Of a stretch of DNA of 64,000 nucleotides, positions 18,971-64,000 are shown one piece after another. A program made the position numbers and the translations under genes. Below the pieces are notes generated by a model, which had not been told where the DNA came from, ran no database searches, and was given only the letters and a program-made list of their open reading frames with translations. The DNA lies in IMG/VR virus record IMGVR_UViG_3300030041_000009, positions 124,001 through 188,000 of that record; one strand, given 5' to 3'. Each line of letters opens with the position of its first letter. Positions within the stretch are counted from its first letter, which is position 1.

Positions 18971-19303
18971 TTATAAATTAAATTTGTTTGATGCTAATAT
19001 AATTTCTGATTTAAAATCATTAGCTAAGCATTGATTTAAAATTATATTATGTTTTATGTCTTTAACGTCAATCCACCAATCCCCTTTATATTTTTCTGTT
19101 ACATATTGATGATCAATTATAAATGGATTTCCTTCATCATCAAAATTTTCCTCATATATTTTTAATACTAAATATTTTTTACCTTCTTTTGGTTCAGTAC
19201 TATTATAATTTTTCCTTTTTTCACCGTGAATGCATATTACTTCATCACCTACTGAAAAATATATATCGTCATTTTCTTCAAATATTTTAAAATTTGTTAT
19301 CAT
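18971..19303 (-). CDS. Dual-tag family protein (MITNFKIFE ... NKFNL)
   Basis: Terminal motifs. Confidence 0.75.
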   Translation of the reverse strand: MITNFKIFEENDDIYFSVGDEVICIHGEKRKNYNSTEPKEGKKYLVLKIYEENFDDEGNPFIIDHQYVTEKYKGDWWIDVKDIKHNIILNQCLANDFKSEIILASNKFNL

Positions 19304-19791
19304 ATGTTAAATTTGTTTGCTGATTTATTTAATTTAAATTCTTCAAATTCTTCTGGAGTTAATACACCAGATGTTTGGAATATTACAAATCCGTTATTTT
19401 TTAATTCTTCTGTGAAATTTTTAATAGCATAATCAGCATAATAAAAAATTTCTGAGTAATCTTCATTACCTTCGTCAGTTAATTCACCAGAATCATCAAT
19501 ATAATATCCTATTGTAATACAAGGAGCTTCCATCATAATACCAATATCAGAAATATTATAAATATATAATAATTCAGAGTTTGAAGATATATTTTCAAAA
19601 TAATCAAAAAAATCTGCTTCCTTTATATCAATATCTTCTTCAACTTTTTCTTTTCCTTCTTCAGTTAATGATATTTTAAGATTCCCATTTTCTAATCTTT
19701 CTAATGTTAAATAATTACCACTGCGTAACTCACGTGTATCATGAGATATCATAGTCTCATTTAGAGTAAATATATTAAATTTTGTTATCAT
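19300..19791 (-). CDS. Dual-tag family protein (probable start MITKFNIF ... NKFNI)
   Basis: Start reassigned to the ATG next to the upstream stop. Confidence 0.7.
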   Translation of the reverse strand: MITKFNIFTLNETMISHDTRELRSGNYLTLERLENGNLKISLTEEGKEKVEEDIDIKEADFFDYFENISSNSELLYIYNISDIGIMMEAPCITIGYYIDDSGELTDEGNEDYSEIFYYADYAIKNFTEELKNNGFVIFQTSGVLTPEEFEEFKLNKSANKFNI

Positions 19792-19792
19792 A

Positions 19793-20233
19793 TTATATGT
19801 TAAATTTATTTGTTGTTTTATATATTTCAATTCCTCCAACTTCATTAATACTATTTAATAATTCTGCTATATTTTCTGTGTCACCAACATATCCAGGATT
19901 AGAATTTTCATCTAAATTGTTAATTGGAAATCCTTCAATATATAATTCATCTTCTAATCCAGAACTTTCCATACTCCAAATTTTATATGTTTTCCCAAAT
20001 ATACTAACTATAGCATAAGCACCTTGATATAAATCGTGTCCTCTAATATCTTTTATTTTTAATATAGTATCATTATCTAAATTTGAAATTATATAATCTA
20101 ATCTTTCTTCTAAATACCTAATTAAACTTGCTTCTTCACTATCATCATCAGGATTATCTTTAACATAGTTCCAATTTACATCTCTACTCCATTCTCCTGT
20201 TTCGTATATTTTAAATGTTTTTAAATGTTTCAT
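19793..20233 (-). CDS. Dual-tag family protein (MKHLKTFKIYE ... NKFNI)
   Basis: Terminal motifs. Confidence 0.75.
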   Translation of the reverse strand: MKHLKTFKIYETGEWSRDVNWNYVKDNPDDDSEEASLIRYLEERLDYIISNLDNDTILKIKDIRGHDLYQGAYAIVSIFGKTYKIWSMESSGLEDELYIEGFPINNLDENSNPGYVGDTENIAELLNSINEVGGIEIYKTTNKFNI

Positions 20234-20286
20234 AAAAATATTTTTTATTTATATATAAAAAACTTGCACAATAAAAATATTTATAT

Positions 20287-20405
20287 TATCTTTGTATTTG
20301 ATTTTAATATCTATTTGTTGTGAAGCAAGAGATATTTAATTTTTAATTTTATTAGTTATATTGTTTTATAAAAAACTCTCTTGCTGTTTATCAGTAAGAG
20401 AGTTT
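20287..20405 (+). ncRNA. Putative small RNA unit 1 (promoter, UGUGAAGCA hairpin, U-rich tract, terminator)
   Basis: Architecture duplicated at 20493-20623 with compensatory stem changes. Confidence 0.55.
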
Positions 20406-20492
20406 AATAAAATTAAAATATTAAAAGACATCAATATATAATATTTTTATAAATAAAATCATTTTCCTATTGTAGGAATAAAATATTTTACT

Positions 20493-20623
20493 TATCTTTG
20501 GATTTCTTTTTACATCTACAATTTGCTGTGAAGCAAAAGATGTTTCTTTTTGTTAAATTTTGTTAGTTGTATTACTTAGTTTTTAGAAAGACTTCCTTAC
20601 TGATATATTCAGTAAGGAAGTTT
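20493..20623 (+). ncRNA. Putative small RNA unit 2
   Basis: TATCTTTG box, ACATCT..TGCTGTGAAGCA..AGATGT hairpin, CTTCCTTACTGA/TCAGTAAGGAAG stem. Confidence 0.55.
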
Positions 20624-20645
20624 AATAAATTAAAAAATTAAAAAT

Positions 20646-20849: not shown

Positions 20850-20895
20850 TAAAATTATATTACTATATACATTACAAACAAAAATTAAAATTCTT

Positions 20896-20949: not shown

Positions 20950-21033
20950 TTGGGTTAGAGTCATGTCTGTTTTTTACCCAATCCTGAAATGGTTTGGGTT
21001 TTTTTGTGCCCAACATTTTATGTTGGGTTTTTT
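20916..21033 (+). promoter_or_regulatory. Transcription attenuator with two tandem terminators
   Basis: Antiterminator GATTGGGT(20948-55)/ACCCAATC(20976-83); terminator 1 at 20976-21005; terminator 2 at 21008-21033. Confidence 0.75.
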
Positions 21034-21043
21034 GTTAATATAC

Positions 21044-21129
21044 TGCCTTGTGATGGAATTGGCTAAACATTTCAGTCTTTGAAACTGATGCTCATTGTGA
21101 GCTTGTGGGTTCGAACCCCACCAAGGCGA
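21044..21129 (+). tRNA. tRNA with TTG (Gln) anticodon on a class II long-variable-arm body
   Basis: Acceptor TGCCTTG/CAAGGCG, anticodon arm TCAGT-CTTTGAA-ACTGA, variable stem GCTCA/TGAGC, T-arm GTGGG-TTCGAAC-CCCAC; CCA not encoded. Confidence 0.85.
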
Positions 21130-21135
21130 CAATAT

Positions 21136-21206
21136 TCTTTCTTGATGTAATGATAGCATATCATTTTCTGACAATGAATGACTAAGTTCAAATCTTAGAG
21201 AAAGAA
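21136..21206 (+). tRNA. tRNA-Gln(CTG), AT-rich
   Basis: Acceptor TCTTTCT/AGAAAGA, anticodon arm TCATT-TTCTGAC-AATGA, T-arm CTAAG-TTCAAAT-CTTAG; D-loop has GA instead of GG. Confidence 0.75.
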
Positions 21207-21207
21207 C

Positions 21208-21244
21208 AAAAAAATCCTGAAATTTAAATTTCAGGATTTTTTTT
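21208..21244. terminator. Bidirectional terminator after tRNAs
   Basis: Perfect palindrome AAAATCCTGAAATTTAAATTTCAGGATTTT. Confidence 0.7.
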
Positions 21245-21502
21245 ATAATCATTATAGAATTTAAGATATTCTTCATCTGTTTGTTTATTAAATTTCATTT
21301 GGTACATTAGAATTTGTCCTAATTCAGCTCCAGATAATTCACCTGAATCAAATCCAAGTTCTTTTATAATTTGGAAGATAGTTTTATTTTTCATATCTTC
21401 TTTACTTGTAGTTCTAAATTTAAACTCTAATTCAATTGCTAATTTTTTAATTTTTTCAGGAATGTTATATTCGAAAAATTCATAAGTTTTAATAAATTTC
21501 AT
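21224..21502 (-). CDS. Hypothetical protein with N-terminal MKFIKTYE tag
   Basis: ORF track. Confidence 0.65.
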   Translation of the reverse strand: MKFIKTYEFFEYNIPEKIKKLAIELEFKFRTTSKEDMKNKTIFQIIKELGFDSGELSGAELGQILMYQMKFNKQTDEEYLKFYNDYKKNPEI

Positions 21503-21608
21503 GCTTTATTTTTTTTATGTTATATATAAAAAATAAGTACTAAGTTTTTTATCTTCACAGATATACTAACTTAGTACTTATTCAACAAACATTATTATGA
21601 TATAGAAA

Positions 21609-22525: not shown

Positions 22526-22531
22526 AATTTA

Positions 22532-24461: not shown

Positions 24462-25196
24462 TTACTGAGAATATATTTTATCATATAAAATGCCTATTAT
24501 ATCAATTAATTTTTTAAATTTTCCTTCATTTCTTAATTTTTTGAATACTAAATTTTCAATTGAAAATTCTCCACTTTCTGATAATCCATCTTTTCTAGAT
24601 TTCATTATCTTAGTTTTTAATTCTTTTGCTTTGTTATAATATTGCTCAGAATCATAAGGATCTAAATTTTGTTTTGATAATTTTTCAAATTCATTAATAT
24701 CTGATGCTCTTAGTTCATATTTAGAATTAACTTCTTTATTGTCTACATTTGGCTGACTATAAGATGGCTCTTTTAACCATATATGATTCATTAATGAATA
24801 ACTACCTGATGATATATTTTCTTCATTTACATCTTGTACATATAACTCAACATCATGTTCTTTTATAATAATGTTATGTCTTATGTTCCACATGAATCTT
24901 TGCCCATCAAATGCTTTTTTAACTAATTCAACATTATCATCTACTTCAGAAAAATCAATTATAATATGTACGTCTAAATCTGATAATTTTGTATAATTAA
25001 AATTGGTAATTGATCCTGTTAATATAATATCTTTTATTTCTGCTTCTACATCTAACTCTTTATAAAAATCTCTTGCAATTCTTAATAATTTTTCTTCGAT
25101 TCTTGGTATAATTACTTTATTTTCCCAAATATCAGGGCAAAGTAATTTTTTATATGATATTTTTCTTTCTGTTATGAAGTTATTATAGCTTTTCAT
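24462..25196 (-). CDS. Pol-beta superfamily nucleotidyltransferase
   Basis: LTGS-x9-SDLDVH and third acidic residue in VELYVQD; N-terminus MKSYNNFITE. Confidence 0.8.
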   Translation of the reverse strand: MKSYNNFITERKISYKKLLCPDIWENKVIIPRIEEKLLRIARDFYKELDVEAEIKDIILTGSITNFNYTKLSDLDVHIIIDFSEVDDNVELVKKAFDGQRFMWNIRHNIIIKEHDVELYVQDVNEENISSGSYSLMNHIWLKEPSYSQPNVDNKEVNSKYELRASDINEFEKLSKQNLDPYDSEQYYNKAKELKTKIMKSRKDGLSESGEFSIENLVFKKLRNEGKFKKLIDIIGILYDKIYSQ

Positions 25197-26099: not shown

Positions 26100-26156
26100 A
26101 GATAATACATTATTTTGAAATAAAAAAATGATATAATGATTTTTATATATAATAAT

Positions 26157-26486
26157 ATGAAATATTTAAAATATTATGAAAATATAGAAGATAATTTAGA
26201 AGTTGGTGATTATGTATTAATTAAAATTAATATACTTCCTTATACTCAAAAACAAATAGATACAGAGAATTTTATAAATAATACTATTGGTAAAATAATT
26301 GATATTATTACTGACCGTAATGATGTTGTTGTGTTATATGAAAATGTGCCTGAAACTATTAAATCTTATTTTAATATTAATAATGGATTAGATATTCGAA
26401 CTTTTGATATTAATAGAATAGTTGAGCATGGTAAAACAAAAGAGCAATTAGAATTAAAATTACAAGCAAATAAATTTAATTTATGA
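26157..26486 (+). CDS. Dual-tag family, VGDYV/NNxIG/YxNxP subfamily
   Basis: MKYLKYYE ... LQANKFNL. Confidence 0.75.
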   Translation: MKYLKYYENIEDNLEVGDYVLIKINILPYTQKQIDTENFINNTIGKIIDIITDRNDVVVLYENVPETIKSYFNINNGLDIRTFDINRIVEHGKTKEQLELKLQANKFNL

Positions 26487-26995
26487 AATACGTAAAAACA
26501 TTTGAAGAAAGAAAATCATCTGATTATAATAATCAATATTTAACAAAAGAAGAAGAATCTTTACTTTCAGTGTTTATCACTGATTATATAAAAAGATTAA
26601 ATATTTTAGATAAAATTGATGATTTAACATTAACAGAACTTGAATCAGATAGGTTTCAACATAGAACAATTTTCAATAATCTTATTGGAATAAATAATTC
26701 ATATACTGATACTAATAGTTTTTATAAAAATATAGACAAATTTATTAAAGAAAAAAACATTAATTCTTCTAGTTTAATTAATCGTAAATCTATATTTAAA
26801 ATAGAAGATAATATTTATAAATATTATAAACCTGAATTTACTAATAAATTAGACAATAAAATAATTGAATTATTATCAAATATTCCGAATTTAGAAATAA
26901 TTAAAAAATATTACAACGAATATTCTTATTATTTTACATCTAAAGTAAAAAATGCATTTTCATATATATTTAATACTGATAAATTTAATATATAA
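26483..26995 (+). CDS. Dual-tag family protein
   Basis: MKYVKTFE ... DKFNI. Confidence 0.75.
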   Translation: MKYVKTFEERKSSDYNNQYLTKEEESLLSVFITDYIKRLNILDKIDDLTLTELESDRFQHRTIFNNLIGINNSYTDTNSFYKNIDKFIKEKNINSSSLINRKSIFKIEDNIYKYYKPEFTNKLDNKIIELLSNIPNLEIIKKYYNEYSYYFTSKVKNAFSYIFNTDKFNI

Positions 26996-30324: not shown

Positions 30325-30702
30325 TTATACGTTAAATTTGCTTGCTGTATTTTTTAATTCCCAATCTTTTATCCAGTCATTAAGTTCAACTTTTTCATTC
30401 AATTCACAATAAATTAAATATACTCTCATTCTATGATTTTTACTACAAAAAATTTCATATAAATCATTAAGATTATCAGCAGTACTAAATTCTATTAATA
30501 TCTTGCTACAATATTCTGAATTATATTTTTCAGCATATTCATCATAAATTAAATTTTTAAGATAAATAAATCCTTGATATTCATTATCACAAAGATAAAC
30601 ATCTGGATTATTGTCATCTTCATCAATATAACTTATAATTGTGCAATAATTATTCCATTTTTCTTTGCTTGCTTCTTCAAATATTTTAGTATATTTTTCC
30701 AT
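30325..30702 (-). CDS. Dual-tag family protein
   Basis: MEKYTKIFE ... SKFNV. Confidence 0.7.
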   Translation of the reverse strand: MEKYTKIFEEASKEKWNNYCTIISYIDEDDNNPDVYLCDNEYQGFIYLKNLIYDEYAEKYNSEYCSKILIEFSTADNLNDLYEIFCSKNHRMRVYLIYCELNEKVELNDWIKDWELKNTASKFNV

Positions 30703-30704: not shown

Positions 30705-31157
30705 TTATATGTTAAATTTTGAAGCATTTTTTCTCATATCAATTGCATCTTTATAAACTTTTTTACCATATTCATCAGCTCCGTAACTTTTATTTTTATT
30801 TATCATTTTTAATAGCCAAGGCTTCATATCACCGTCAGATTTACCTTCAATATCCGTTCTCATTTCTTTTGGTAACCATATATGATATATTTTACTATCA
30901 ATTTGAAATTTTTCTCTCATTTCTAATCCATGAATTGAAAATAATCCATGATAATCAGGAGTAATTCTAATCATATTTTCGATTTCTAATTCTTTTTTAT
31001 ATAATCCTCCTTTAGTTTCTTTAAATGTATCTTTTGCAAGAAAAATATAAAAATCATTGTCTTCACTTTTTGGATTTCTACTCATCAAATCTGCTAATAA
31101 ATCAACTTTTTCTTGTTCTTTTTCTGTTAATGACTCAAATGCTTTAACGTGTTTCAT
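30705..31157 (-). CDS. Dual-tag family protein
   Basis: MKHVKAFE ... SKFNI. Confidence 0.75.
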   Translation of the reverse strand: MKHVKAFESLTEKEQEKVDLLADLMSRNPKSEDNDFYIFLAKDTFKETKGGLYKKELEIENMIRITPDYHGLFSIHGLEMREKFQIDSKIYHIWLPKEMRTDIEGKSDGDMKPWLLKMINKNKSYGADEYGKKVYKDAIDMRKNASKFNI

Positions 31158-31171: not shown

Positions 31172-31702
31172 TTATATGTTAAATTTTTTTGCTGTAATAA
31201 ATCGTATAACATTTTCATCATCAATAGTATCAATAATTTCTTTTCTAAATTCTTTTGTTGAAATATCCAAGAAATCTTGACCTTTATCATTAGTTAAATA
31301 TATATTAGAACCTAATTTAATTAATGTTTCAACTGCTAATATTTTATTATTCATAGAAGCTAACATTAACGCTGTTAATCCTTTATAATTTTCATTTATA
31401 TATTCTTCATCTCCAAATTCTATTAATGTTTCAATTATATCAATTTTTCCAATATAAGATGCAATCATTAATAATGTCCAATTTGCATTATCGATATCTG
31501 GAATTATATCTAATGTACGTTTAATATCATAAGATACTCCAAAAATTATACCATTAAGTTTATAAATTCTATCATTTATATTTATCTTGTTTTTATCTAA
31601 TAGCTTCTTCATTTTTAATGAATTATCTTCAATAATAATATCAAGTACATCGTTTCGACGTTTTCCTTCTATTATATTTTCAAAGGTTTTTACGTATTTC
31701 AT
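31172..31702 (-). CDS. Ankyrin-repeat protein, dual-tag family
   Basis: TLLMIAS, GLTALMLAS..LIKLGS; MKYVKTFE ... KKFNI. Confidence 0.8.
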   Translation of the reverse strand: MKYVKTFENIIEGKRRNDVLDIIIEDNSLKMKKLLDKNKININDRIYKLNGIIFGVSYDIKRTLDIIPDIDNANWTLLMIASYIGKIDIIETLIEFGDEEYINENYKGLTALMLASMNNKILAVETLIKLGSNIYLTNDKGQDFLDISTKEFRKEIIDTIDDENVIRFITAKKFNI

Positions 31703-32043
31703 AAATTAAATTTATTTGCTTGTAATTTTAATTCTAATTCTTCAATTGTTTTACCATGTTCAACTATTCTATTATATCTAACATTTTTTATTATTTTACC
31801 ATTTTCTTCTATAAACCATATCTTACGTATACGTTCTGGAACATTATTATATTCTATTGTTATATTATTATATAACTTATTAGGACTAAATATTTCTATA
31901 ACTTTACCAATATTATTATTTATAAATTTCATAAATTCTTTTGAACCAACAACTGTAGAATTATAATTAATATTTATTAAAACATAATCTCCTACTTTTA
32001 TATCATCATTACTAATATTTTCAAATTCTTTAATATATTTCAT
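31699..32043 (-). CDS. Dual-tag family, VGDYV subfamily
   Basis: MKYIKEFE ... LQANKFNL. Confidence 0.75.
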   Translation of the reverse strand: MKYIKEFENISNDDIKVGDYVLININYNSTVVGSKEFMKFINNNIGKVIEIFSPNKLYNNITIEYNNVPERIRKIWFIEENGKIIKNVRYNRIVEHGKTIEELELKLQANKFNL

Positions 32044-32044: not shown

Positions 32045-32905
32045 TTATAGTTTCATCAGTTTTTTACAGTAAAGATAATATAAAAAAGCGGTAAATACCT
32101 TATCTCTGGTATAATTTTCTATCATAATAGGAATATTTAAATATTCTTTATATTTATCTGACATTTCATCTTCAAATGTGACAATATATTCATCAAAAAT
32201 TGTCAGGCTGTTATTCATAATTATCTCATTATAAAGTTTATATGGATCTTTATCTTTTGATTTTTGTTTAAATTCATCTACATTTTTTGCTCTTTCTACA
32301 TTTAGAAATAAAATTTCACGAATTTCTTTATCACTTATATTAAATTGCACATTTTTTAAATGATTTACAATAATATCTGATACTATATTAGCTTTTTTAC
32401 CGTACATATTTTTAACAATTCTTGTAAAGTTTTCAGCAAAATCTCTTTTGAATTGATTTGTAACCTCATCAAATTCAACTTCAGATTTTTTTAATTTTCG
32501 TTCAGATGAATATTCAGGTAACCAACCTCCTGATACTATAACATATGATTTACATCCTCTTTTAATTTTACTTAAAATATCAGATATTGTTGTTTTTACT
32601 CTATCTACTTTTCCCCAATCTTCATTTCCAAAATCATCTTTTTCAATTAACTTAAATGTTTCTATATAATATTCTGATTCATAAGAGAATGAAACAAATA
32701 TATTATTTTTACAAATTGAAACTATTAGATTATTAGTAGGTTCTGTTAAATATTTTATAATATCTTTTTTTACTTTTAATAATTTCCATTCTGCATCACT
32801 TGATATTTCATAATTTTTCTGCATACTTTTCATAACAGAATATGGCACTCCTATATTAATAAGGGATGTTTTTTCAAAAATTTTATATGTTTTTATATGT
32901 ATCAT
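32045..32905 (-). CDS. Hypothetical protein with N-terminal tag MIHIKTYKIFE
   Basis: ORF track. Confidence 0.7.
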   Translation of the reverse strand: MIHIKTYKIFEKTSLINIGVPYSVMKSMQKNYEISSDAEWKLLKVKKDIIKYLTEPTNNLIVSICKNNIFVSFSYESEYYIETFKLIEKDDFGNEDWGKVDRVKTTISDILSKIKRGCKSYVIVSGGWLPEYSSERKLKKSEVEFDEVTNQFKRDFAENFTRIVKNMYGKKANIVSDIIVNHLKNVQFNISDKEIREILFLNVERAKNVDEFKQKSKDKDPYKLYNEIIMNNSLTIFDEYIVTFEDEMSDKYKEYLNIPIMIENYTRDKVFTAFLYYLYCKKLMKL

Positions 32906-33171
32906 ATGTTAAATTTATTTGCTGATTGTTCTAATTCATATTGTATTTTTTCTTCTGGCGTTGCTAATCTAAATCTATTATCATTCCAATCATAATTAAT
33001 ATTATAAAAATTGTATTGTGTAACACCACTCCTATATGTTATAATATTTTCAATTTTGTAAAATTTGCCATATTCTAATAACTCTTCAGTATCTGAATGA
33101 TCTATACATTTAACCACATCTCCTATTTTTATTTGTTCATTATTTTCAAATAATTTGAAATTAGTTATCAT
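32902..33171 (-). CDS. Dual-tag family protein
   Basis: MITNFKLFE ... NKFNI. Confidence 0.75.
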   Translation of the reverse strand: MITNFKLFENNEQIKIGDVVKCIDHSDTEELLEYGKFYKIENIITYRSGVTQYNFYNINYDWNDNRFRLATPEEKIQYELEQSANKFNI

Positions 33172-33284
33172 AAAATATCATTTTTTTATAATTATATATA
33201 TAAAAAAAGAAAATAAAAATATTTATAAAAAAATCAGTTTTTTTATTTAATATATAATAGAAATTAAAAAATAAATTAAAAAAT

Positions 33285-35167: not shown

Positions 35168-35241
35168 ATTAGTATATATAAATATTTTTATTTATAAGTT
35201 ATATTTTTTTATATATAATAATGAAAAAATTAATAAATTAA

Positions 35242-50172: not shown

Positions 50173-50206
50173 ACTAATATATATAAAAAAAAGTTAGTAA
50201 AAATTA

Positions 50207-52881: not shown

Positions 52882-52984
52882 TTTTATTTTATTTTTATTT
52901 AAGCAAATATATAAATTAATTTGCATACCCACAAATGATTTTATATTTTTTATATATAATAATATAATAAAATAAAGTTTATAT

Positions 52985-53434
52985 ATGAAATATTTAGAAA
53001 GTTATAAAGTAATAGAACCGTCCGATATTAAAGTTGGAGGAGAATATGGTAAATTACCAGGAGTAATTATTAGTGATAAATTTTTTGAAAAAATACCATA
53101 TATTATTAATTTTTTAAATTCAAAAAAAATAAAATTTGAATTATTTACTAATGATATATATTTTTTTATAATATTAAATCATGTTGATGATATTAATTTA
53201 TTACCATATAACTATAATAGTATGGAACATATAATTCCGTTATCGGATGATTATAATAGAGATGATATATTGAGTAAATTACAATTGAATTGGTATAAAA
53301 ATAAATTTCAAAAATATAATCCTGATGTTATATTTAGAGATTTTACAATTAAAACCTCAGACGATATGATAGAATTAAAAGAATATATTAATAACCTTTT
53401 AATTAAAATAAGTGCAAAAAAATTTAATCTATAA
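52985..53434 (+). CDS. Dual-tag family protein
   Basis: MKYLESY ... KKFNL. Confidence 0.7.
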   Translation: MKYLESYKVIEPSDIKVGGEYGKLPGVIISDKFFEKIPYIINFLNSKKIKFELFTNDIYFFIILNHVDDINLLPYNYNSMEHIIPLSDDYNRDDILSKLQLNWYKNKFQKYNPDVIFRDFTIKTSDDMIELKEYINNLLIKISAKKFNL

Positions 53435-53452: not shown

Positions 53453-54835
53453 ATGAGATATATTAAAAATTATGAATATTTTACTCCAATCAAAATAAAT
53501 AACGAAAAACCTTTCAAAATTGATGATAACATTGCAGATAAGATTGCATATATGCAAGATAGTCTCAAAAAACTTAGAAAGAGAGTTCAAAACGAAAAAG
53601 ATAGAAAAACACAAGCAGAATTAAATAATGAAATAAATATTAAAGTTAAAAAACTTAGTGACTTAACATTTAAACAAACTAAACAAGTTGCATATTTAAA
53701 AAATAATCCAATAACAGAAAGTTCTGATGTTGAAGATAATATAGATAATATACCAAATTTAATAAAAGTATTATCATCAAAGAAATTTAAACCAGAAGAT
53801 ATCAACAAATATATTGGATTCGATGAAGATGAAGCAATAATAAATTCAGAAAAAAATTATCATTATCCATATGAAAAAGAATTTTCATATGATGAGAAAG
53901 GATTCACTTTAATTATTAATATTGAGGTTCTTGAAAATTTACTTGATATCGAAAATGGTTCTATAAGTTCTATTTTACAATTAACTCGAGATAATAATAA
54001 TTATGAATTCTATGTTGATAAAGAAGAATTAGATTATTTGGGTAATTATACAAAAAAAGAAACTAATGATAAAATTATAGAATTATCCAAGTTATTTTAT
54101 TTTGACGATAATATAGATCCTACAGAACAAGGTAAAATAGCAGACTTATTTAAATATTTAGATTTAACTGATGATTTAGAAACATTTGAAAGTGAAATTT
54201 CAATGGCTCATGAACGTGCAGTAGAAATAGCAGCAAAGAAAGCATTAGAAAAAATGCCTTTTAATATTAATGATAATACTAATCATGATAGTGACACAAA
54301 AAAATATCAGATAGAATTGGTTTTTGAGTATAAAACTATGATTAAGTATATGATAAAATATAAATTAAATGTTAAAACTATTAAAGAATTTTTATCTAAT
54401 ATATATGATTCTGATGACTTAAGATATGAAACTATTGAATATGAAGATAGTTATAGTCATCTTAATTTTGATAATTTAAAAAACTCTATTGATGATGTAG
54501 TTAGTAAATATGTAGACAGTCCTGATGATATATTTCCGATTTGGATTAAAACAGATAATTTAGAAATGTTTAAAAAAATGGAAAAAAAATATGCATTTTA
54601 TGATTATGACTATGATATTTGGTTTAAATATTATAGAAAGCATATAAATTTATTAGAAATTGCTAAATTATATAATGGAAAAATATTAGAATGGTTTAAA
54701 ACTTATGAATTTCAAAAATACTTAATTGAAAATGATAATGAAAATTATAAATTAATAATGAAATCAAATATATTGAATCCTGAAATTATAAATGAATATA
54801 GTTATATTGTAAATGTAGATAAATTTAATATGTAA
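53453..54835 (+). CDS. Large acidic dual-tag family protein
   Basis: MRYIKNYE ... DKFNM. Confidence 0.75.
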   Translation: MRYIKNYEYFTPIKINNEKPFKIDDNIADKIAYMQDSLKKLRKRVQNEKDRKTQAELNNEINIKVKKLSDLTFKQTKQVAYLKNNPITESSDVEDNIDNIPNLIKVLSSKKFKPEDINKYIGFDEDEAIINSEKNYHYPYEKEFSYDEKGFTLIINIEVLENLLDIENGSISSILQLTRDNNNYEFYVDKEELDYLGNYTKKETNDKIIELSKLFYFDDNIDPTEQGKIADLFKYLDLTDDLETFESEISMAHERAVEIAAKKALEKMPFNINDNTNHDSDTKKYQIELVFEYKTMIKYMIKYKLNVKTIKEFLSNIYDSDDLRYETIEYEDSYSHLNFDNLKNSIDDVVSKYVDSPDDIFPIWIKTDNLEMFKKMEKKYAFYDYDYDIWFKYYRKHINLLEIAKLYNGKILEWFKTYEFQKYLIENDNENYKLIMKSNILNPEIINEYSYIVNVDKFNM

Positions 54836-54840: not shown

Positions 54841-55203
54841 ATGAAACACTTAAAAATATTTGAAGAATTTGACGATGATGACGAATTATCACCAGTAGGA
54901 CATTATACATCTCAACATGTAGGAGATTATGTAAAATTAGAAGATTATGTAAAATTAGATGATTCTGAAAGTGAATTGAATGTTGTAGGTCCATTTGTTA
55001 AAATTATTGAAGTTAACGATACAGATTTTGATGAAAATGATGATGATATGTATGAGCCAAGATATAAAGTAATATCTATTCATAAAAAGACAAGAGAATT
55101 AAAAGAATTTTGGATAGGTGAAAGTGAGATTGATAGAGATTTAACTTCAAGTGAAATTGAAGAACTTGAACTATTATTAACAGCAAACAAATTTAATATG
55201 TAA
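54841..55203 (+). CDS. Dual-tag family protein
   Basis: MKHLKIFEEF ... NKFNM. Confidence 0.75.
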   Translation: MKHLKIFEEFDDDDELSPVGHYTSQHVGDYVKLEDYVKLDDSESELNVVGPFVKIIEVNDTDFDENDDDMYEPRYKVISIHKKTRELKEFWIGESEIDRDLTSSEIEELELLLTANKFNM

Positions 55204-55207: not shown

Positions 55208-55732
55208 ATGAAACATTTAAAAATATTTGAAGAATTTGACGATGATGAAGATTTCGAAGAATATCATGATATTAATGAATTTGAAAATGATTACGATATA
55301 GATACTGCTGTTGATAGCTATATAACAGCATTAATTTGGACTGAAGAAGGTCATGAAACAGATTATGATCCATGGGAAGGAAAAAATATATATGATATCG
55401 ATGAAAATTCTAAAGATGAGATTGTAAAAGAAGTTGAATGGTTTATTAATTCAGCAGGAGATGTTTTTGAAGATATGACAGATGACCAAATTGGTAATGA
55501 TTTATGGTTGACAAGAAATGGACATGGATCTGGATTTTTTGAAAGAATAAATGATAGTGAAAACTTAACAATCATTACTAAATTATGTGATGTTTTAGGA
55601 AATGTAGATGCTGAAATAGGAGATGATGGTAATATATATCATCATTCAAATGATAAATATAAAACTTTTAATGTAGATGAATATAAAAAGAAAATAGAAT
55701 TTGATAAAACAGTAAATAAATTTAATTTATAA
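55208..55732 (+). CDS. Dual-tag acidic protein with GxDxWLTRNGHGxGF motif
   Basis: MKHLKIFEEF ... NKFNL; motif recalled from phage proteins of unknown function. Confidence 0.75.
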   Translation: MKHLKIFEEFDDDEDFEEYHDINEFENDYDIDTAVDSYITALIWTEEGHETDYDPWEGKNIYDIDENSKDEIVKEVEWFINSAGDVFEDMTDDQIGNDLWLTRNGHGSGFFERINDSENLTIITKLCDVLGNVDAEIGDDGNIYHHSNDKYKTFNVDEYKKKIEFDKTVNKFNL

Positions 55733-55756: not shown

Positions 55757-56002
55757 ATGAAAAATGCTAAATACATAGAAAAAAATCCTAAATATAAGAA
55801 AGGAGATTTCGTTAAGTTGATTGAGAATAATTTGAAAGTTGAAAATTTAGTACATATTTTAGATGTAAATGATGAGTTAAAATCACCAGATTATTATATT
55901 GAAGCATTTAATATTAAAACTCAAGAAATAGTTAAAATATGGATCGATGAAGAAGAAATAGATAAAAAAACCAATGCAAAAGGAAAAATAAAATTTAAAT
56001 AA
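55757..56002 (+). CDS. Hypothetical protein related to 54841..55203
   Basis: GDFVKL..WIDEEEID. Confidence 0.6.
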   Translation: MKNAKYIEKNPKYKKGDFVKLIENNLKVENLVHILDVNDELKSPDYYIEAFNIKTQEIVKIWIDEEEIDKKTNAKGKIKFK

Positions 56003-56003: not shown

Positions 56004-56414
56004 TTGAAATATATTAAAAAGTTTGAAAAATCAAATAGTAAAGAGAAAATTCAAGAACTCGCTTATTATATACATAATTTTATAAATAAAAATCAAAATG
56101 AAATTATTTATTCATATGAATATAATTGTGATTATGCGTTTAGTTATAATAAAAATGATATACAAAGAAATTATTTTTTAAATTTAAGATTATCCACAAA
56201 TAATGATTATTTTTTGTTTGATATTAATACTATACTAGATAATCCAGGATGGATAGATTCAGAAATAGAAAAAATATCAAAATTTATAAAATATATAATG
56301 GATAAATATTCAGAATTAGGTAGAATAAAAATCACAGAAATAGATAATATTATAAATGATATATCAAAAGAAAATTACGAAATTTATCTAAATGCATTAA
56401 AATTTAATTTATAA
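56004..56414 (+). CDS. Dual-tag family protein (TTG start)
   Basis: MKYIKKFE ... LKFNL. Confidence 0.7.
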   Translation: MKYIKKFEKSNSKEKIQELAYYIHNFINKNQNEIIYSYEYNCDYAFSYNKNDIQRNYFLNLRLSTNNDYFLFDINTILDNPGWIDSEIEKISKFIKYIMDKYSELGRIKITEIDNIINDISKENYEIYLNALKFNL

Positions 56415-56479: not shown

Positions 56480-57088
56480 TTATTTTTGGAAAAGATTATC
56501 CTTTACATTATTTTCGGTATAATAAGTCGTTGCAGCAGAAATATTTGAATATGCTACTATTATTCCGTCATTCGTAGCATCATAATTAAATGAATTGCTT
56601 CTACTCATTCCCATTGATTCTGCGACAAAACATGAATCTTGATTTGCACCTAAATAAATAAATTCAATATTTAAATTTTCTCTCATATCTGTCACCATTA
56701 ATTTAATCATATCACGACTATATATAGTAGAAGAATTTTCTTCTCCGTCTGTTAATATAACAAATAATGTTTTATCACTTCTTTTACTTTTTTTAGTTGA
56801 TCCTAGTTGCTTTATATAATTATCTGAAGCAAATCCTAACGCATCATATAAACTAGTACCACCATTAGCATAATAAGTGTTTTCATTAAGTTCATTTACT
56901 TCTTTAATGTCAACGTTTTTATATGGCATATAAAAACTTGTATCAAAAAACATCAATGAAAAATTTATTTTATTTCCATTTTCCTTTTGTTCCGTTAAGA
57001 ATTTGTTAAATCCTTCTCTCGCTTTTACTATTATCGACCCCATTGAGCCAGACATATCCAATATGCAAACTATATCTACCTTATTCAT
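56480..57088 (-). CDS. von Willebrand factor A domain protein
   Basis: MIDAS DMSGSM, GGTSLYDA, ILTDGEENSS. Confidence 0.9.
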   Translation of the reverse strand: MNKVDIVCILDMSGSMGSIIVKAREGFNKFLTEQKENGNKINFSLMFFDTSFYMPYKNVDIKEVNELNENTYYANGGTSLYDALGFASDNYIKQLGSTKKSKRSDKTLFVILTDGEENSSTIYSRDMIKLMVTDMRENLNIEFIYLGANQDSCFVAESMGMSRSNSFNYDATNDGIIVAYSNISAATTYYTENNVKDNLFQK

Positions 57089-57096
57089 ATTATAAA

Positions 57097-57984
57097 TTAA
57101 ATTTTAGTTCCGCATTTCGGACAGAATTTCCAAGAACTTTTTCTTAAACGATATCCGCACTCATTACAATATTCACGTATCTCATTGATACTCTGAGATT
57201 TAGAAGAATAAGGCATAAGTTTATAAGATATTGAATAGAATGATGTATTTGAAAATTCGACGTTTACATTTTTTAATTTTTGATCTGATAATTCTCCTTT
57301 TTCAACTCTACCAGTTTCAATAGAATTAATATTTAAACTAGATGTAAATGTTGATCCTCCAATATTACTTGATGAATTAAATATATTATTATTTAATGAA
57401 TTGCAACTTTGAGTATAAACACAACTAGTATCTGAATTATATTTAGAATTAGAATTATTAGTATCAAAAAATCCAGAAAAACTTATAGAATTTCCAGTTA
57501 ATGATGTTATTGAAGAATTTCCAAAATAATTTCCATAATATGTTCCAGTGTTATTAAGATTATTATAATTATAAGGCTTAGGTGGAAATTCATAATTTAC
57601 ATTTACTTCATTAGTATTATTACTTCTCCAATATTCTTTATAGAAATTAAAGGTAATTAATCCATTTTTTTCAATCGCTTCTAACGCTTCTTTATTATTA
57701 CCATCAATGTTATAAGTTTCAAATAACATTTTACGTTGTTCATCTAAAAACCGATCTAAAAATACATTTTGACCAGGATTTAAAATTAAATAAGAATCTC
57801 CTTTTTTGATTCCGTTAAATTCGATACTAACTCCAATTTTTTCATTTGTTGGATTGAAAAAATTAAGTTCAAAGTTATCACCATTATTTAAGTAAATAAT
57901 GTTACCTTGATAAATTTTCAATTCGTTTCTTTTGCTAGAAATTTGAACAGAAGGGTTCCTGTCCAACAGTTTGTTGTTTGTCAT
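57097..57984 (-). CDS. Hypothetical protein with C-terminal double Zn ribbon
   Basis: YCNECG..FCPKCG; co-oriented with vWA gene. Confidence 0.75.
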   Translation of the reverse strand: MTNNKLLDRNPSVQISSKRNELKIYQGNIIYLNNGDNFELNFFNPTNEKIGVSIEFNGIKKGDSYLILNPGQNVFLDRFLDEQRKMLFETYNIDGNNKEALEAIEKNGLITFNFYKEYWRSNNTNEVNVNYEFPPKPYNYNNLNNTGTYYGNYFGNSSITSLTGNSISFSGFFDTNNSNSKYNSDTSCVYTQSCNSLNNNIFNSSSNIGGSTFTSSLNINSIETGRVEKGELSDQKLKNVNVEFSNTSFYSISYKLMPYSSKSQSINEIREYCNECGYRLRKSSWKFCPKCGTKI

Positions 57985-60459: not shown

Positions 60460-60933
60460 TTATATGTTGAATTTTTCAGCTTCTTGTTGTAATAAATAAT
60501 CTTCATATTTATCTGGATAATCTTTTTTAATTTTTTCTTTAATTTCAGTAGGTAAATAATCAAAAAAAGTAATTTTAACAATTCTACCTTTAACATTCCA
60601 ATCAGCTCCTGAATCTATTAATAATTTTATAGTATCATAATTTTCGATATAAGGAAACATAAATCTATTAGAGGATGCTAGTAATAATGGTGTATAACCT
60701 TGATTTGTAGTATCTTGGATATTTACATCCGCTCCGTTTTTAATTAATATTTTTAAAATATCAATATTATTAACAGAATATATTAATGAGTTGAAACCAT
60801 CTTTATTGATATAATTAACATCAGCTCCTTGTTTTATTAAACTTTCAACTTTTTTTATATTATTATTTATACAAGAGTCTATTAATTCATTATTTAAATC
60901 TAAATTTTGTTCAAATGTTTTTATATATTTCAT
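60460..60933 (-). CDS. Ankyrin-repeat protein, dual-tag family
   Basis: LIKQGADVN, GYTPLLLAS; MKYIKTFE ... EKFNI. Confidence 0.85.
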   Translation of the reverse strand: MKYIKTFEQNLDLNNELIDSCINNNIKKVESLIKQGADVNYINKDGFNSLIYSVNNIDILKILIKNGADVNIQDTTNQGYTPLLLASSNRFMFPYIENYDTIKLLIDSGADWNVKGRIVKITFFDYLPTEIKEKIKKDYPDKYEDYLLQQEAEKFNI

Positions 60934-61445
60934 ATATTAAATTTTTCAGAAGTTTTTATCATTAAATATATTTCATATTGTTTATGATATTTCTTTAATA
61001 TATGTCTTTTAAATTCGTTATCTTGTATATGTTCAAGAAAATCTTTTTCACGTCCATAATTTTGTGTTTTATTCCAATCTGCTCCTGCATCAATTAATTT
61101 TTCCATTATAGATTTATAATAATCACTACTACTTCCAGTGCTACCTATTGCTGAGATTATTAATGCTGTATTTCCATTATCATCTTGTAAATCTAAATTC
61201 ACATCTGATTTTATCAATTCATCAAATACTTTTTCATATCTATTAATCATAGAATATATTAAAGCTGTTCTATAACTTAGTTGATCTTGTAAATTTAAAT
61301 CTATTTGTCCAGAATTTATCATATCAATCATTTCAGCTTCTCCTTTTGAACCTAAATCATGCATCTGAACAAGATTCAATAGTTCATAAGTATGGTATTG
61401 TTTCTCATTGAATTTTAATTCCTCATATAATTTCAAATGTTTCAT
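60930..61445 (-). CDS. Ankyrin-repeat protein, dual-tag family (start MKHLKLYE)
   Basis: TALIYS, GNTALII, LIDAGADWN; ends EKFNI. Confidence 0.8.
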   Translation of the reverse strand: MKHLKLYEELKFNEKQYHTYELLNLVQMHDLGSKGEAEMIDMINSGQIDLNLQDQLSYRTALIYSMINRYEKVFDELIKSDVNLDLQDDNGNTALIISAIGSTGSSSDYYKSIMEKLIDAGADWNKTQNYGREKDFLEHIQDNEFKRHILKKYHKQYEIYLMIKTSEKFNI

Positions 61446-61504
61446 ATCTTTATATATAAAAAATAACTTATAAATTTTATATATAGATAAAATCAATTAT
61501 TAAT

Positions 61505-61819
61505 ATGAAAATAAAAAAATTTAATGAAAATTCAACTGATAGCATTACAGGAATATTCGCTATTGTTACTATACCAGTTGATAAACGTCATATTCCTTTT
61601 GATGATTTGATTAAAGATAGTTATTATATACAATATGAAAAGGATTATAAAAATGATAAAAAATCGTTAATACAATATACAATTGAGCATATTATTCTTG
61701 AAGAAGGATTATTAAATTTTTCATATAAATTAGTTGATGAATTTGGTAAAGAAATAACAACAGAAGAATTATATAACCGAATTGAACTTAATGATAGTGC
61801 AAATAAATTTAACTTATGA
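61505..61819 (+). CDS. Dual-tag family protein
   Basis: MKIKKFNE ... NKFNL. Confidence 0.7.
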   Translation: MKIKKFNENSTDSITGIFAIVTIPVDKRHIPFDDLIKDSYYIQYEKDYKNDKKSLIQYTIEHIILEEGLLNFSYKLVDEFGKEITTEELYNRIELNDSANKFNL

Positions 61820-62305
61820 AATACATAAAAACATTTGAATCAAGGAAAAAAGAAAATATGATTAATTTAATAAATTTAGATAATGATTCTAAAATTATAA
61901 AAGTAACTCAAGAAGAACTTGATGCATTAATAGACAATGATTTTACAGTTCTTTATGATAATGAAAGAATTAGATATGATTCAAATCATCTAGATGAATG
62001 GAGATATGATTCAGATGAAGAAGATGATATAAAAAAGTTTTTAAAATCATTTAGAAGGCATGATAGCGTTATATGCTTTGAGTAGCAAAAAAATAATAAG
62101 AGTTACGAAGGAAGAACTCAATGTATTAATAGGAGAAAAATTTGAAATTCTTTATGATGATGACGAAATAGTTCATGATCCAACTTTACCAAATGAATGG
62201 AGATATGATGATGATGAATATGAAGAAATAACAAGATGGTTAGAATTATATAGAATATTAAAAGATCCTGAACAAGTTAATCAAACAATTAAATTTAACT
62301 TATGA
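61816..62305 (+). pseudogene. Probable single two-repeat dual-tag gene split by a frameshift (ORFs 61816..62085 and 62060..62305)
   Basis: First ORF has only the N-tag, second only the C-tag; both contain KIIxVTxEEL..EWRYD. Confidence 0.6.
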
Positions 62306-62799
62306 AATATATAAAAAGGTTTGAAAGTTTAGATCAAAATGATGCTGAATTTTATTTAGAAGTTACACCAGAAATTGCACTTAGTTTTTGTAATGGTAAG
62401 CCGTTACCTTCTGATGATCCTATACCATTAAATCATCAAATTTTAGAATATGCATTTGGAATGGCTGATGATGTAACAGATAATGATTATATCTCTGCTG
62501 CTATAGATGTTTGCGATTGGTTTGATGGTACTCCAAAATCAATAAAAGATGGAGTAAATGCTATCAATCAATATGAATTTGATTATGTAAGTGAAGGACC
62601 AGATTTTGTATTAGGAGTCAATTACGATGGTGAATCAGCAGAATTTGGAGATATTCATGTATTTTTAAAAGATTATAGAAAAATTGAAGTAGTTTTTGTT
62701 TATGATTGTAAGAAGGAAAAATTTATGACTCCGAAATATTTTAGAAATATTTATAGTATTCCTGGATTATATAATAATATAGATAAATTTAACTTATGA
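62302..62799 (+). CDS. Dual-tag family protein
   Basis: MKYIKRFE ... DKFNL. Confidence 0.75.
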   Translation: MKYIKRFESLDQNDAEFYLEVTPEIALSFCNGKPLPSDDPIPLNHQILEYAFGMADDVTDNDYISAAIDVCDWFDGTPKSIKDGVNAINQYEFDYVSEGPDFVLGVNYDGESAEFGDIHVFLKDYRKIEVVFVYDCKKEKFMTPKYFRNIYSIPGLYNNIDKFNL

Positions 62800-63047
62800 A
62801 ATATATAAAAAGATTTGAAAAGAAATTATTTAATCCTAACGATTGTAAAGTTGGTGATTATATAAAATATAGACAAAATAACTATACATTTGATGCTAAA
62901 ATAATTAAAAAAGACGAGTCATTTTATTTAGTTCAAAATGAAATATGTAAAATTGGAATTATTAAAGAACAAATTTTAAGATTTTTAACTTCATTAGAAA
63001 TTGAAAATTTTGAATTATTATTAAATACCAATAAATTTAATTTATGA
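62796..63047 (+). CDS. Dual-tag family protein
   Basis: MKYIKRFE ... NKFNL. Confidence 0.75.
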   Translation: MKYIKRFEKKLFNPNDCKVGDYIKYRQNNYTFDAKIIKKDESFYLVQNEICKIGIIKEQILRFLTSLEIENFELLLNTNKFNL

Positions 63048-63355
63048 AATATATAAAGAAATTTGAAAATAATATTGATTTACCAGAAGTTGGTGATTAT
63101 GTTTTAATGAATAGTTATAGTACTAATAGCGTTATAAATTTTGTAACTAAAAATTTTGGTAGATTAACAGCTGTAGAATTCGATCCAAATTTAAAAAAAT
63201 ATAAATGTAGAGTTAGATATGAAAATATACCAGATAATATAGATTTATTTTTTCATGATGGTACAAGAATTTTTGATATCGAATTATTAGTGGAATATGG
63301 AAAAACAATTGAAGAATTAAAATTGAAATTACAAGCAAATAAATTTAACTTATGA
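63044..63355 (+). CDS. Dual-tag family, VGDYV subfamily
   Basis: MKYIKKFE ... LQANKFNL. Confidence 0.75.
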   Translation: MKYIKKFENNIDLPEVGDYVLMNSYSTNSVINFVTKNFGRLTAVEFDPNLKKYKCRVRYENIPDNIDLFFHDGTRIFDIELLVEYGKTIEELKLKLQANKFNL

Positions 63356-63687
63356 AATATATAAAGAAATTTGAAAATATTAAAGATGAACCAAAAGTAG
63401 GAGATTATGTATTAATGAAATCTTCCATGCAGAATAAAGAAATGACTGATTTTATTGATAATACTATTGGTAAAATTATAAAAATTGAAATAAAATATCA
63501 TTTCAATACAGTAAGTGTTGAATACGAAGATATACCTATGGAGATTGCAAGTTTATTTGGATATGAGAATTATAATCTTAATCATAATATTGGATTTAGA
63601 GAATTTTTATATAGTAGTATTATTGATTATTCTGAAAATAAAGAAGATTTAGAATATAAAATAAAAGCAAAAAATTTTAATCTATGA
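63352..63687 (+). CDS. Dual-tag family, VGDYV subfamily
   Basis: MKYIKKFE ... KNFNL. Confidence 0.75.
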   Translation: MKYIKKFENIKDEPKVGDYVLMKSSMQNKEMTDFIDNTIGKIIKIEIKYHFNTVSVEYEDIPMEIASLFGYENYNLNHNIGFREFLYSSIIDYSENKEDLEYKIKAKNFNL

Positions 63688-64000
63688 AATATATAAATAC
63701 ATTTGAAAAATATGGTGATTGGAAATATGAGGATAAATATTGGCAAGTAACATTATTGCAACCATATTTTAGATTGTCTTTAAAAAAGATAGGAGTACCA
63801 GATGATTTAATTGAAGATTGGTGCCTTTGGTATACTAATGAAAATGTTCTTGTATATATTTATAAAGAAAAAGTTAAACAATATAATAGCTTAACAGATG
63901 ATTATGATGAATATTTTGAATGGATTTTAAAATTAGAACCAGATAATAGAGATCATGCATTATTTATGGGAAAGGTTAAACTTCAAGATTTTGAACTGAC
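63684..64000 (+). CDS. Partial N-tagged protein (MKYINTFE...), runs off window
   Basis: Manual translation. Confidence 0.65.
   Translation, partial: MKYINTFEKYGDWKYEDKYWQVTLLQPYFRLSLKKIGVPDDLIEDWCLWYTNENVLVYIYKEKVKQYNSLTDDYDEYFEWILKLEPDNRDHALFMGKVKLQDFEL

Follow-up and report, generated by a model that had tools for sequence, protein, structure and literature searches.

The 64-kb stretch of viral DNA examined here (the window: positions 124,001 to 188,000 of IMG/VR record IMGVR_UViG_3300030041_000009, ~21% G+C, numbered from its first letter) probably derives from an AT-rich megaphage of a T4-related group with Gp23-type capsids, from peat-bog samples. It carries arrays of genes with differing cores whose products begin with a short peptide of the type MK[YH][IL]Kx[FY]E (the N-tag) and end in K[FY]N[LI] directly before the stop codon (the C-tag). 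These tagged genes cover 32% of positions 18971-64000 and none of positions 1-18970 (Table 1). An earlier note on this DNA had reported about 32 open reading frames (ORFs) ending in KFN(L/I/M/V), almost all of them with the N-tag, and our counts agree: among ORFs of at least 30 amino acids (aa), 32 have the C-tag, 26 the N-tag and 23 both tags, and most of those with the C-tag only show variant N-tags (MITNFKIFE, MKIKKFNE, MEKYTKIFE) or a mis-called start (26157, 19791). In six-frame translation of the window the K[FY]N[LIMV]-stop ending turns up 38 times, whereas 30 sequences simulated with a second-order Markov model contain 3.1 such endings on average and never more than 8. Internal copies are depleted (16 seen, 31 expected), and a strict N-tag pattern, M[KR][YH][ILV]K.[FY]E, is found at 23 starts and at none in 20 simulations.

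Tagged genes and their cores

In family-weighted logos the N-tag reads M1 K2 [YH]3 [IL]4 K5 x6 [FY]7 E8, and information drops beyond residue 8. The C-tag reads [AST][NKD]K[FY]N[IL] over positions -6 to -1, and extends beyond these positions with weaker preferences for Leu at -10 and Glu at -11, -13 and -14; it occurs almost solely on proteins with the N-tag or a variant of it. At 18 of 31 junctions the stop codon after the C-tag overlaps the next start as ATGA, and NKFN[LI]-TGA overlapping ATG-AAA-TAT makes up a recurring junction DNA element of ~40 nucleotides (nt). The other 13 C-tags end in TAA and are still perfect, several of them directly 5' of terminator hairpins, as the earlier note had said of operon ends, and some N-tags directly follow promoter-like TTTTTATATATA sites, so that each tag occurs independently of the junction. 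Between such a site and the first gene of a tagged operon lie 15-35 nt, and the window holds 63 matches to the motif with at most one mismatch (28 expected). A metatranscriptome contributed a few exact contigs of low depth, with contigs on 46044-46331 among them, a weak sign of transcription for which DNA carry-over is possible.

Table 1. Positions of the tagged genes, TTTTTATATATA sites and other listed features in the window
Feature	Position	Strand	Remarks
110 aa, MITNFKIFE...NKFNL	18971-19303	-	SH3-like (VGDxV) core; terminator hairpin after stop
~163 aa, MITKFNIF...NKFNI	19300-19791	-	re-assigned start; acidic
146 aa, MKHLKTFK...NKFNI	19793-20233	-	first gene after TTTTTATATATA site
92 aa, MKFIKTYE	21224-21502	-	N-tag only, no C-tag
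244 aa, MKSYNNFITE	24462-25196	-	start 5/9 identical to the T4 capsid-targeting sequence, I-x-E present; no C-tag
109 aa, MKYLKYYE...NKFNL	26157-26486	+	length from second ATG; SH3-like
170 aa, MKYVKTFE...DKFNI	26483-26995	+	orphan core
125 aa, MEKYTKIFE...SKFNV	30325-30702	-	variant N-tag
150 aa, MKHVKAFE...SKFNI	30705-31157	-	orphan core
176 aa, MKYVKTFE...KKFNI	31172-31702	-	ankyrin repeats
114 aa, MKYIKEFE...NKFNL	31699-32043	-	SH3-like; AlphaFold2 model
286 aa, MIHIKTYKIFE	32045-32905	-	variant N-tag; no C-tag
89 aa, MITNFKLFE...NKFNI	32902-33171	-	SH3-like; first gene after TTTTTATATATA site
110 aa, MKHLKLYE...NKFNI	45455-45787	+	SH3-like; after untagged NUDIX gene
111 aa, MKYIKEYE...NKFNI	45784-46119	+	SH3-like
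145 aa, MKHIKEYT...NKFNI	46116-46553	+	orphan core
115 aa, MKYIKTFE...KKFNI	46550-46897	+	SH3-like
Decayed tagged gene, MKHLKIYE...SKFNL	46894-47306	+	many in-frame stops; end in other frame
109 aa, MKYIKTFE...NKFNI	47303-47632	+	SH3-like
132 aa, MKYLKTFE...KKYNI	47629-48027	+	orphan core
62 aa, MKNLKTFE	48047-48235	+	N-tag only; poly-Lys run; probably truncated
219 aa, MKYIKKYE...NKFNL	48239-48898	+	two SH3-like modules; terminator after stop
95 aa, MKHINKFK...NKFNL	49346-49633	-	variant N-tag
180 aa, MKYLKKFE...NKFNL	49630-50172	-	acidic orphan; Phe of C-tag = TTC; first gene after TTTTTATATATA site
149 aa, MKYLESYK...KKFNL	52985-53434	+	orphan core
460 aa, MRYIKNYE...DKFNM	53453-54835	+	largest tagged protein; no Pfam match
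120 aa, MKHLKIFE...NKFNM	54841-55203	+	acidic SH3-like
174 aa, MKHLKIFE...NKFNL	55208-55732	+	very acidic; NGHGSGF-motif core
ORF with LKFNL end	56004-56414	+	no N-tag (TTG start as listed); terminator follows; may be the tail of a gene split with 55757-56002
157 aa, MKYIKTFE...EKFNI	60460-60933	-	ankyrin; AlphaFold2 model; terminator follows
171 aa, MKHLKLYE...EKFNI	60930-61445	-	ankyrin; first gene after TTTTTATATATA site
104 aa, MKIKKFNE...NKFNL	61505-61819	+	variant N-tag
Split tagged gene	61816-62305	+	61816-62085 (N-tag) and 62060-62305 (C-tag); intact 162-aa ortholog L105:400-888
165 aa, MKYIKRFE...DKFNL	62302-62799	+	acidic orphan
83 aa, MKYIKRFE...NKFNL	62796-63047	+	short SH3-like
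103 aa, MKYIKKFE...NKFNL	63044-63355	+	SH3-like
111 aa, MKYIKKFE...KNFNL	63352-63687	+	SH3-like
Tagged gene, MKYINTFE...	63684-64000	+	leaves the window; 112-aa ortholog in L020 ends DKFNL
TTTTTATATATA site, example	52947-52958	+	
Other TTTTTATATATA sites	20250-20261	-	tagged operon
	21521-21532	-	tagged operon
	26140-26151	+	tagged operon
	33195-33206	-	tagged operon
	50178-50189	-	tagged operon
	61451-61462	-	tagged operon
Further TTTTTATATATA sites	13903-13914	+	
	35206-35217	+	
	40003-40014	-	
gp32-type single-strand DNA-binding gene	33715-34689	-	database comparison
Cas7fv-like gene	1697-2770		CRISPR-Cas locus
299-aa gene without assignment	2781-3680		CRISPR-Cas locus
Cas6 gene	3664-4368		CRISPR-Cas locus
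CRISPR array	4470-6811		~35 copies of 36-nt repeat GATATTATTTATATAAATCCGTAAGGGAGTCTCAAC, spacers ~30 nt
HD-helicase Cas3 gene	6997-9294		CRISPR-Cas locus

About 14 of the tagged ORFs in the window form one paralog family with an SH3-like core (VGDYV) and three encode ankyrin-repeat proteins; the remainder have neither a Pfam match nor BLAST similarity to one another. A scan of IMG/VR with a DNA pattern of the junction returned 120 loci from a narrow set of samples (33000288xx to 33000315xx, plus 3300020048 and 3300009502), whose 264 unique dual-tagged proteins fall into 85 BLAST clusters, the largest being SH3-like (77), ankyrin (25) and LRR (14). Searches of Pfam and PHROGs with 88 representatives brought up only Ank, LRR, ExoX-like_C and DUF4240, plus 12 PHROGs of unknown function. 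A single paralogous family behind all tagged proteins was considered and ruled out, a common core fold being limited to the SH3-like members, of which there are 14 in the window and 77 among the 264 clade proteins.

A profile of the SH3-like family found 246 metagenomic homologs, all unannotated, and nearly all of the 120 listed among them carry both tags or recognisable variants. No match to a tagged SH3-like protein was obtained by tblastn against 50,697 GenBank phage records, so at the tblastn sensitivity used the family is absent from deposited phages, and its model, compared with PDB and BFVD by Foldseek, resembled SH3-like (PsaE) structures only weakly (E > 0.03). The NGHGSGF core (55208-55732) has homologs outside the clade that carry neither tag; members within the clade have gained MKHLKIFE in front and a tail of ~25 residues ending in KFNL behind, so the tags are modules that were added to domains already in existence. 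The tagged proteins are of small size and soluble, and a transmembrane-like segment was seen in one of 85.

AlphaFold2 predicts a small SH3-like barrel for one member of the VGDYV family (pLDDT 82), with residues 1-10 at pLDDT 42 and, at the C-terminus, a helix (100-112) followed by a low-confidence NKFNL (pLDDT 49). In the model of an ankyrin member (pLDDT 89) residues 1-10 stand at 58, and the C-tag is the end of the terminal helix at ~75. In these models both tags look like exposed linear motifs, probably helical.

Some untagged genes are interspersed with these arrays. An untagged NUDIX hydrolase gene (44874-45455) opens the largest tagged operon, in an order conserved in a related phage (L127), and the interval 56480-57984 between tagged arrays holds two minus-strand genes, one for a VWA-domain protein (56480-57088) and the other for a zinc-ribbon protein (57097-57984). 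A tRNA-Gln pair (anticodons TTG and CTG; 21044-21207, plus strand) lies amid minus-strand ORFs, and the ORF that overlaps it (20974-21276, minus strand) is probably no gene.

The tags are conserved as peptides

The tags are under selection at the protein level. Eighteen window genes were paired with homologs picked by core similarity alone (40-85% identity), and all 18 partners retain both tags. N-tag, C-tag and core show 0.157, 0.167 and 0.143 synonymous and 0.231, 0.167 and 0.365 non-synonymous differences per codon, respectively, with tag replacements limited to exchanges within Y/H, I/L/V/M, F/Y, K/R and L/I/M; a set of same-length pairs gave the same picture. Because synonymous divergence in the tags matches that of the cores, the tags must be maintained as peptides and not as DNA or RNA elements. 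The earlier note had argued for such selection and had named conservation solely at the DNA level as one outcome that would speak against its proposal; the synonymous-site comparison came out against DNA-only conservation.

Codon usage within the tags is varied. Six codons are in use at the aliphatic position 4 of the N-tag, and the last residue of the C-tag is written TTA, CTA, ATA, ATG or GTA, which takes in all four first bases and retains hydrophobicity. The synonymous pairs that the earlier note had seen in the C-tag are both present, Phe being written TTT and TTC and the Asn at -2 AAT in 16 cases and AAC in 15. A DNA-level cassette as the sole explanation was rejected, given that synonymous divergence in tags equals that in cores and that several codons serve each position, and an RNA-level operator (RegA-like) was rejected on the same synonymous-site data. 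The AAC codon of the C-tag is an observation of its own: it is used in 48% of the 31 genes versus 7.6% genome-wide (p ~1e-9) and is favoured before ATA (10 of 14) over before TTA (4 of 13), a bias that might stem from selection for accuracy at a residue of critical importance, or from avoidance of TATATA as a promoter-like string.

Capsid targeting and other possible roles

Why would a phage mark so many proteins at both ends? The nearest known counterpart is found in the T4 internal proteins, as the earlier note had proposed. IPII and IPIII start with MKTYQEFIAE, a capsid-targeting sequence (CTS) of 10 residues that is sufficient for head targeting, with residues 4 and 7 serving targeting and residues 8 and 10 processing, and gp21 cuts after L/I-x-E (PMC9026906). 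The internal proteins of T-even phages are diverse anti-restriction or defence-countering proteins with only the CTS in common (PMC3012670). In a minority class among the C-tagged proteins of the bog clade, MKKYKEFINE is identical to the CTS at 6 of 9 positions and MKKYNQFINE and MKTYQQFNE at 5 of 9; starts with at least 5 of 9 identities have a composition-based chance of ~1e-4 per ORF, which makes 0.12 expected in 1076 ORFs, and ten were observed. The main form of the N-tag has only M1, K2 and F7 in common with the CTS and carries its aromatic residue one position earlier (Y at 3, not 4), and 81% of tagged families have Glu at position 8. The tagged arrays and the T-even loci of internal proteins (IPI, IPII, IPIII and the hypervariable IP loci) are alike, too, in that a peptide of ~8-10 residues with an MK start, an aromatic or aliphatic residue at 3-4, Phe at 7 and a terminal Glu precedes otherwise unrelated small proteins, encoded by diverse, fast-evolving genes in arrays.

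Relatives of the bog phage that bear the N-tag have gp20-, gp21- and gp23-type genes. The first 350 kb of LR756504 (26.5% G+C) contain ~25 ORFs that start with MKYLK[LIT][FY]E, but the K[FY]N[LI] ending is found in only one of 726 ORFs there. The genes for its portal (gp20-like), protease (gp21-like, with a long scaffold-like tail fused to it) and capsid protein (gp23-like) are neighbours. Protease and capsid genes of these types are likewise present in the N-tag-bearing L140 and L251. In all three the gp21-like protease makes up the N-terminal portion of a larger protein of 720-760 aa encoded between the portal and capsid genes (LR756504, L134:35342-37636; L140:7644-9917; L251:7761-9929), which looks like a protease-scaffold fusion. 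The LR756504 capsid protein has 1988 homologs, with Pfam Gp23 in all 120 listed, and 18 inspected capsid N-termini have in common a propeptide junction that agrees with the T4 rule, ...EYAE[YF]H[SQ][ILV]-x-E|N. Such Gp23 head modules often have N-tagged genes in their surroundings, and L160 has seven MKHIKL[FY]EQF[IV]NE paralogs within 10 kb of the capsid gene. The N-tag thus is an old trait of Gp23-type megaphages, and the C-tag, specific to the bog clade of 21% G+C, was added later. With its CTS-like starts and its company of T4-type head genes, the N-tag is probably a relative of the T4 CTS and thus a known type of signal in a new form.

What follows is a proposal, in which packaging, cleavage and injection are inferred, as is whatever role the C-tag has. 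The phage would carry a large, fast-diversifying arsenal of small soluble proteins, each with two portable, exposed terminal peptides, and the tagged genes would represent a greatly expanded repertoire of internal or ejection proteins. The N-tag, in forms from MK[YH][IL]Kx[FY]E to MKKYKEFINE, would tether the cargo to the scaffolding core during prohead assembly and would usually be removed after its conserved Glu by a gp21-type prohead protease. The C-tag, a putative short helix ending in [AST]-[NKD]-K-[FY]-N-[LI]-COOH, would be a clade-specific second address on the same cargo, acting most likely either as a docking peptide with a free carboxylate, comparable to those of encapsulin cargo, or as a C-terminal propeptide like that of T4 Alt; its task would be to retain or arrange the cargo within the head so that it is delivered along with the DNA.

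Several observations weigh against this model. The canonical [LIVM]-x-E with P1 at positions 8-16 is present in only 32% of tagged families, which would mean that the clade's protease differs or that most N-tags stay uncut, and the main form of the N-tag, unlike the CTS, ends in [FY]-E with K or T, not L or I, at P3. Tagged genes number 36 in 45 kb, which implies very many cargo species, whereas T4-type phages have three to about a dozen internal protein genes per genome. The cargo is mostly acidic, with a median isoelectric point of 5.0 for the tagged proteins of the window versus 7.6 for untagged ORFs, whereas T4 internal proteins are basic; these also lack the additional C-terminal tag, which has no sequence match to known packaging signals. 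That the cores differ, as the earlier note had stated, is borne out by the ankyrin, SH3-like and many orphan proteins, but its count of ~32 unrelated proteins was overstated, with ~14 of them in one paralog family. The TTTTTATATATA motif also precedes genes for PPK2, DeoC aldolase and a GIY-YIG endonuclease, none of them obviously late or structural, and one for a Fib_succ_major protein, so it is no marker of late genes, and late co-expression of the tagged genes with head genes would not follow from it. Lastly, the head module of the 21% G+C clade itself, protease included, was not found: T4 head proteins searched against 960 kb of clade loci, the LR756504 major capsid protein (MCP) and a 12-sequence MCP profile searched against IMG/VR, two AT-biased codon patterns, 10-kb walks off each window end and two MCP contigs chosen by size or composition led only to other megaphages, of 24-48% G+C. 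One relative with 24.5% G+C (L226, IMGVR_UViG_3300020048_000026) has a 107-aa ORF (L226:3589-3912) with the invariant capsid motif LLPMAMKVAARTIGLDLVAVKP; it is much too short for a capsid protein and could be a fragment or a decoy-like paralog.

Weighing both sides, we lean modestly towards the N-tag as a capsid-targeting peptide of the T4 kind, and we hold the packaging model as stated, with the C-tag as second address, to be tentative, its chances falling somewhat short of even. Any specific role for the C-tag is doubtful, and slightly more doubtful is a complete two-ended address code in which a T4-like N-tag and a new, portable K[FY]N[LI]-COOH load a large and diverse collection of small effectors (SH3-like, ankyrin, LRR, acidic DNA-mimic-like) into a giant head for injection with the DNA.

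Other readings explain parts of the same evidence. ClpX- and Tsp-type proteases recognise terminal peptides, and the tags might be turnover signals, terminal degrons in which a free hydrophobic C-terminus (Phi-x-Phi-COOH) and an N-terminus of the form M-K-aromatic-aliphatic are read by an AAA+ protease of host or phage, or by a PDZ-type tail-specific protease, so that early takeover proteins are cleared together at a fixed time. The strictly terminal position of the C-tag with its depletion of internal copies, the exposure of the tags in the AlphaFold models, the small, acidic and soluble character that tagged proteins have in common with early phage proteins, and a promoter class used by metabolic and not clearly late genes would all suit such a role. 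The C-tag consensus, however, shares only a hydrophobic free end with known degrons, matching neither LAA-COOH nor the MuA type (basic-A-I-COOH); two degrons per protein on more than 80 families are unparsimonious, and the likeness of the N-tag to the CTS and its spread in Gp23-type megaphages, sometimes beside the capsid gene, go unexplained. We therefore regard clearance as improbable. To assembly handles inside the infected cell, which would bind a common hub or one another and so gather the proteins in a phage-made body or on a host structure, or import them into a compartment, we give a similarly small chance. Peptides predicted to be terminal, partly helical and amphipathic that are detachable from their cores, were added to domains found elsewhere untagged and almost always come as a pair (C-tagged proteins with an N-tag variant too) are what handles should look like, but no hub or compartment gene was identified, and the N-tag's CTS likeness and its spread in T4-type megaphages point to the prohead core as the hub.

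Two further readings fare worse. Tandem arrays with decayed and split copies, and a recurring ~40-nt junction element that retrieves 120 IMG/VR loci, suggest ends that are passive or promote recombination, with shuffled cassettes (as has been proposed for the mobile regulatory cassettes of T4-type phages, PeSL-like) and functionless peptides. Synonymous tag sites that diverge as fast as cores, the codon variety (six codons at position 4, all four first bases in the last codon, AAT and AAC at nearly 50:50), tags kept at operon starts and ends away from junctions, the tagging of unrelated folds and the untagged outgroup of one core leave this scarcely credible. Ankyrin and LRR cores are classic effectors against eukaryotic cells, and the C-terminal region, with an excess of Glu between -11 and -17, a small residue at -6 and hydrophobic ones at -3 and -1, loosely resembles type IVB signals in its acidic stretch and hydrophobic end, so that the tags could route phage proteins through host secretion. 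The main export route of Bacteroidota, the type IX secretion system, requires a Sec signal peptide and a C-terminal domain of ~80 aa, and the tagged proteins have neither; the host is likely of that phylum (see below). Genes for secretion were not seen, the C-tag is a near-invariant tetrapeptide where known signals for secretion are degenerate, and the N-tag would be left over. Export is very unlikely.

Returning to packaging, the C-tag can be set beside several known head and shell signals. T4 Alt, an ejected ADP-ribosyltransferase, loses 6 residues at its N-terminus (ITE-6) and 63 at its C-terminus (LTE-619), and the role of the two propeptides is still unknown (PMC5694885). It is head cargo, as the tagged proteins would be, flanked by N- and C-terminal peptides linked to incorporation into, and maturation of, the head; its C-propeptide, however, is 63 residues long, cut at LTE and unique to Alt, whereas more than 80 families share the short C-tag with its near-invariant tetrapeptide, with an upstream Glu of the cleavage type common but not universal. 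The C-propeptide of T4 Alt (3' end of the gene, L126:25455-25694) ends in ...MPYKFVQG, whose K-F pair, as in the C-tag, is probably a coincidence.

Encapsulin cargo binds the interior of an HK97-fold shell through short C-terminal peptides (PMC8346489), and in Family 1 these, like the C-tag, sit at the extreme C-terminus of diverse cargo and are portable to foreign proteins. Their GSL-type consensus (SDGSLGIGSLKRS) is unrelated to K[FY]N[LI], though, and no GSL appears in the C-tag logo; the window has no shell gene, the capsids of the clade are of the Gp23 type, encapsulins are cellular, DNA-free compartments, and the binding pocket, formed by an N-terminal helix, is generally missing in phage capsid proteins. 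The head and ejection families of giant phages, such as the inner-body proteins of phiKZ and family B of SPN3US, a 20-member family of head-protein paralogs (PMC5694885), resemble the tagged genes in that many genes encode head-internal proteins, several processed in the gp21 manner, but they are true paralogs with a common fold, whereas tagged proteins share termini only and differ in fold. Neither the K[FY]N[LI]-COOH tag nor the pairing of two terminal tags appears to have been described before; full-text searches on capsid-targeting sequences and on huge phages or megaphages brought up no paper whose title or abstract describes the tags, which is a weak negative.

If the tags are packaging signals, they would reveal the injected protein arsenal of uncultivated megaphages directly from genomes, with a catalogue of at least 85 candidate anti-defence or host-takeover families, almost all unannotated, and would bear on what huge phage heads contain besides DNA and on how hosts are disarmed at entry. 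The short C-tag would then offer a new handle for loading foreign proteins into capsids, beside the T4 CTS and encapsulin peptides, and, if the two-ended address code is true, no C-terminal signal for packaging or ejection would have been defined in a tailed phage before it. Even without packaging, a near-invariant free C-terminal tetrapeptide and an eight-residue N-terminus, both selected at the protein level on unrelated folds, imply an unknown receptor or protease.

Source phage and the remaining genes

The gp32-type protein has its nearest database matches in uncultured megaphages of 630-735 kb (LR756501-4 and LR745206, 42-47% identity), followed by T4-like phages at 28%. The window also encodes two DNA methyltransferases and the GIY-YIG homing endonuclease, and its DNA is present as well in sample 3300029922, on a JGI contig of 181 kb, and on others that reach 346 kb; for the clade there are contigs of 346, 531 and 711 kb.

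The TAnnTTTG -7 box is a Bacteroidota promoter type, and since boxes resembling it precede several untagged genes (for example TATCTTTG), the host is likely a member of the Bacteroidota, as judged from these motifs. Boxes of this kind lie upstream of 12286, 24110 (minus strand), 28242 (minus strand) and 58218. Positions 1697-9294 hold a phage-borne CRISPR-Cas locus, and a search with its repeat GATATTATTTATATAAATCCGTAAGGGAGTCTCAAC for a host found no match in 185,579 species genomes.

At the left end of the window, positions 130-1631 contain six head-to-tail overlapping ORFs of ~88 aa, part of a set of 15 in the full contig (upstream continuation L249:6034-9935). Their products start with MNNFNDGDKILC or MKNQNLNVGDKLLC and end in ...KLEKLYEE, with neither the N-tag nor the C-tag. 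LR756504 has a similar small family (GDxL) that ends in ...RKxIIxELL, which looks like a different conserved C-terminus.

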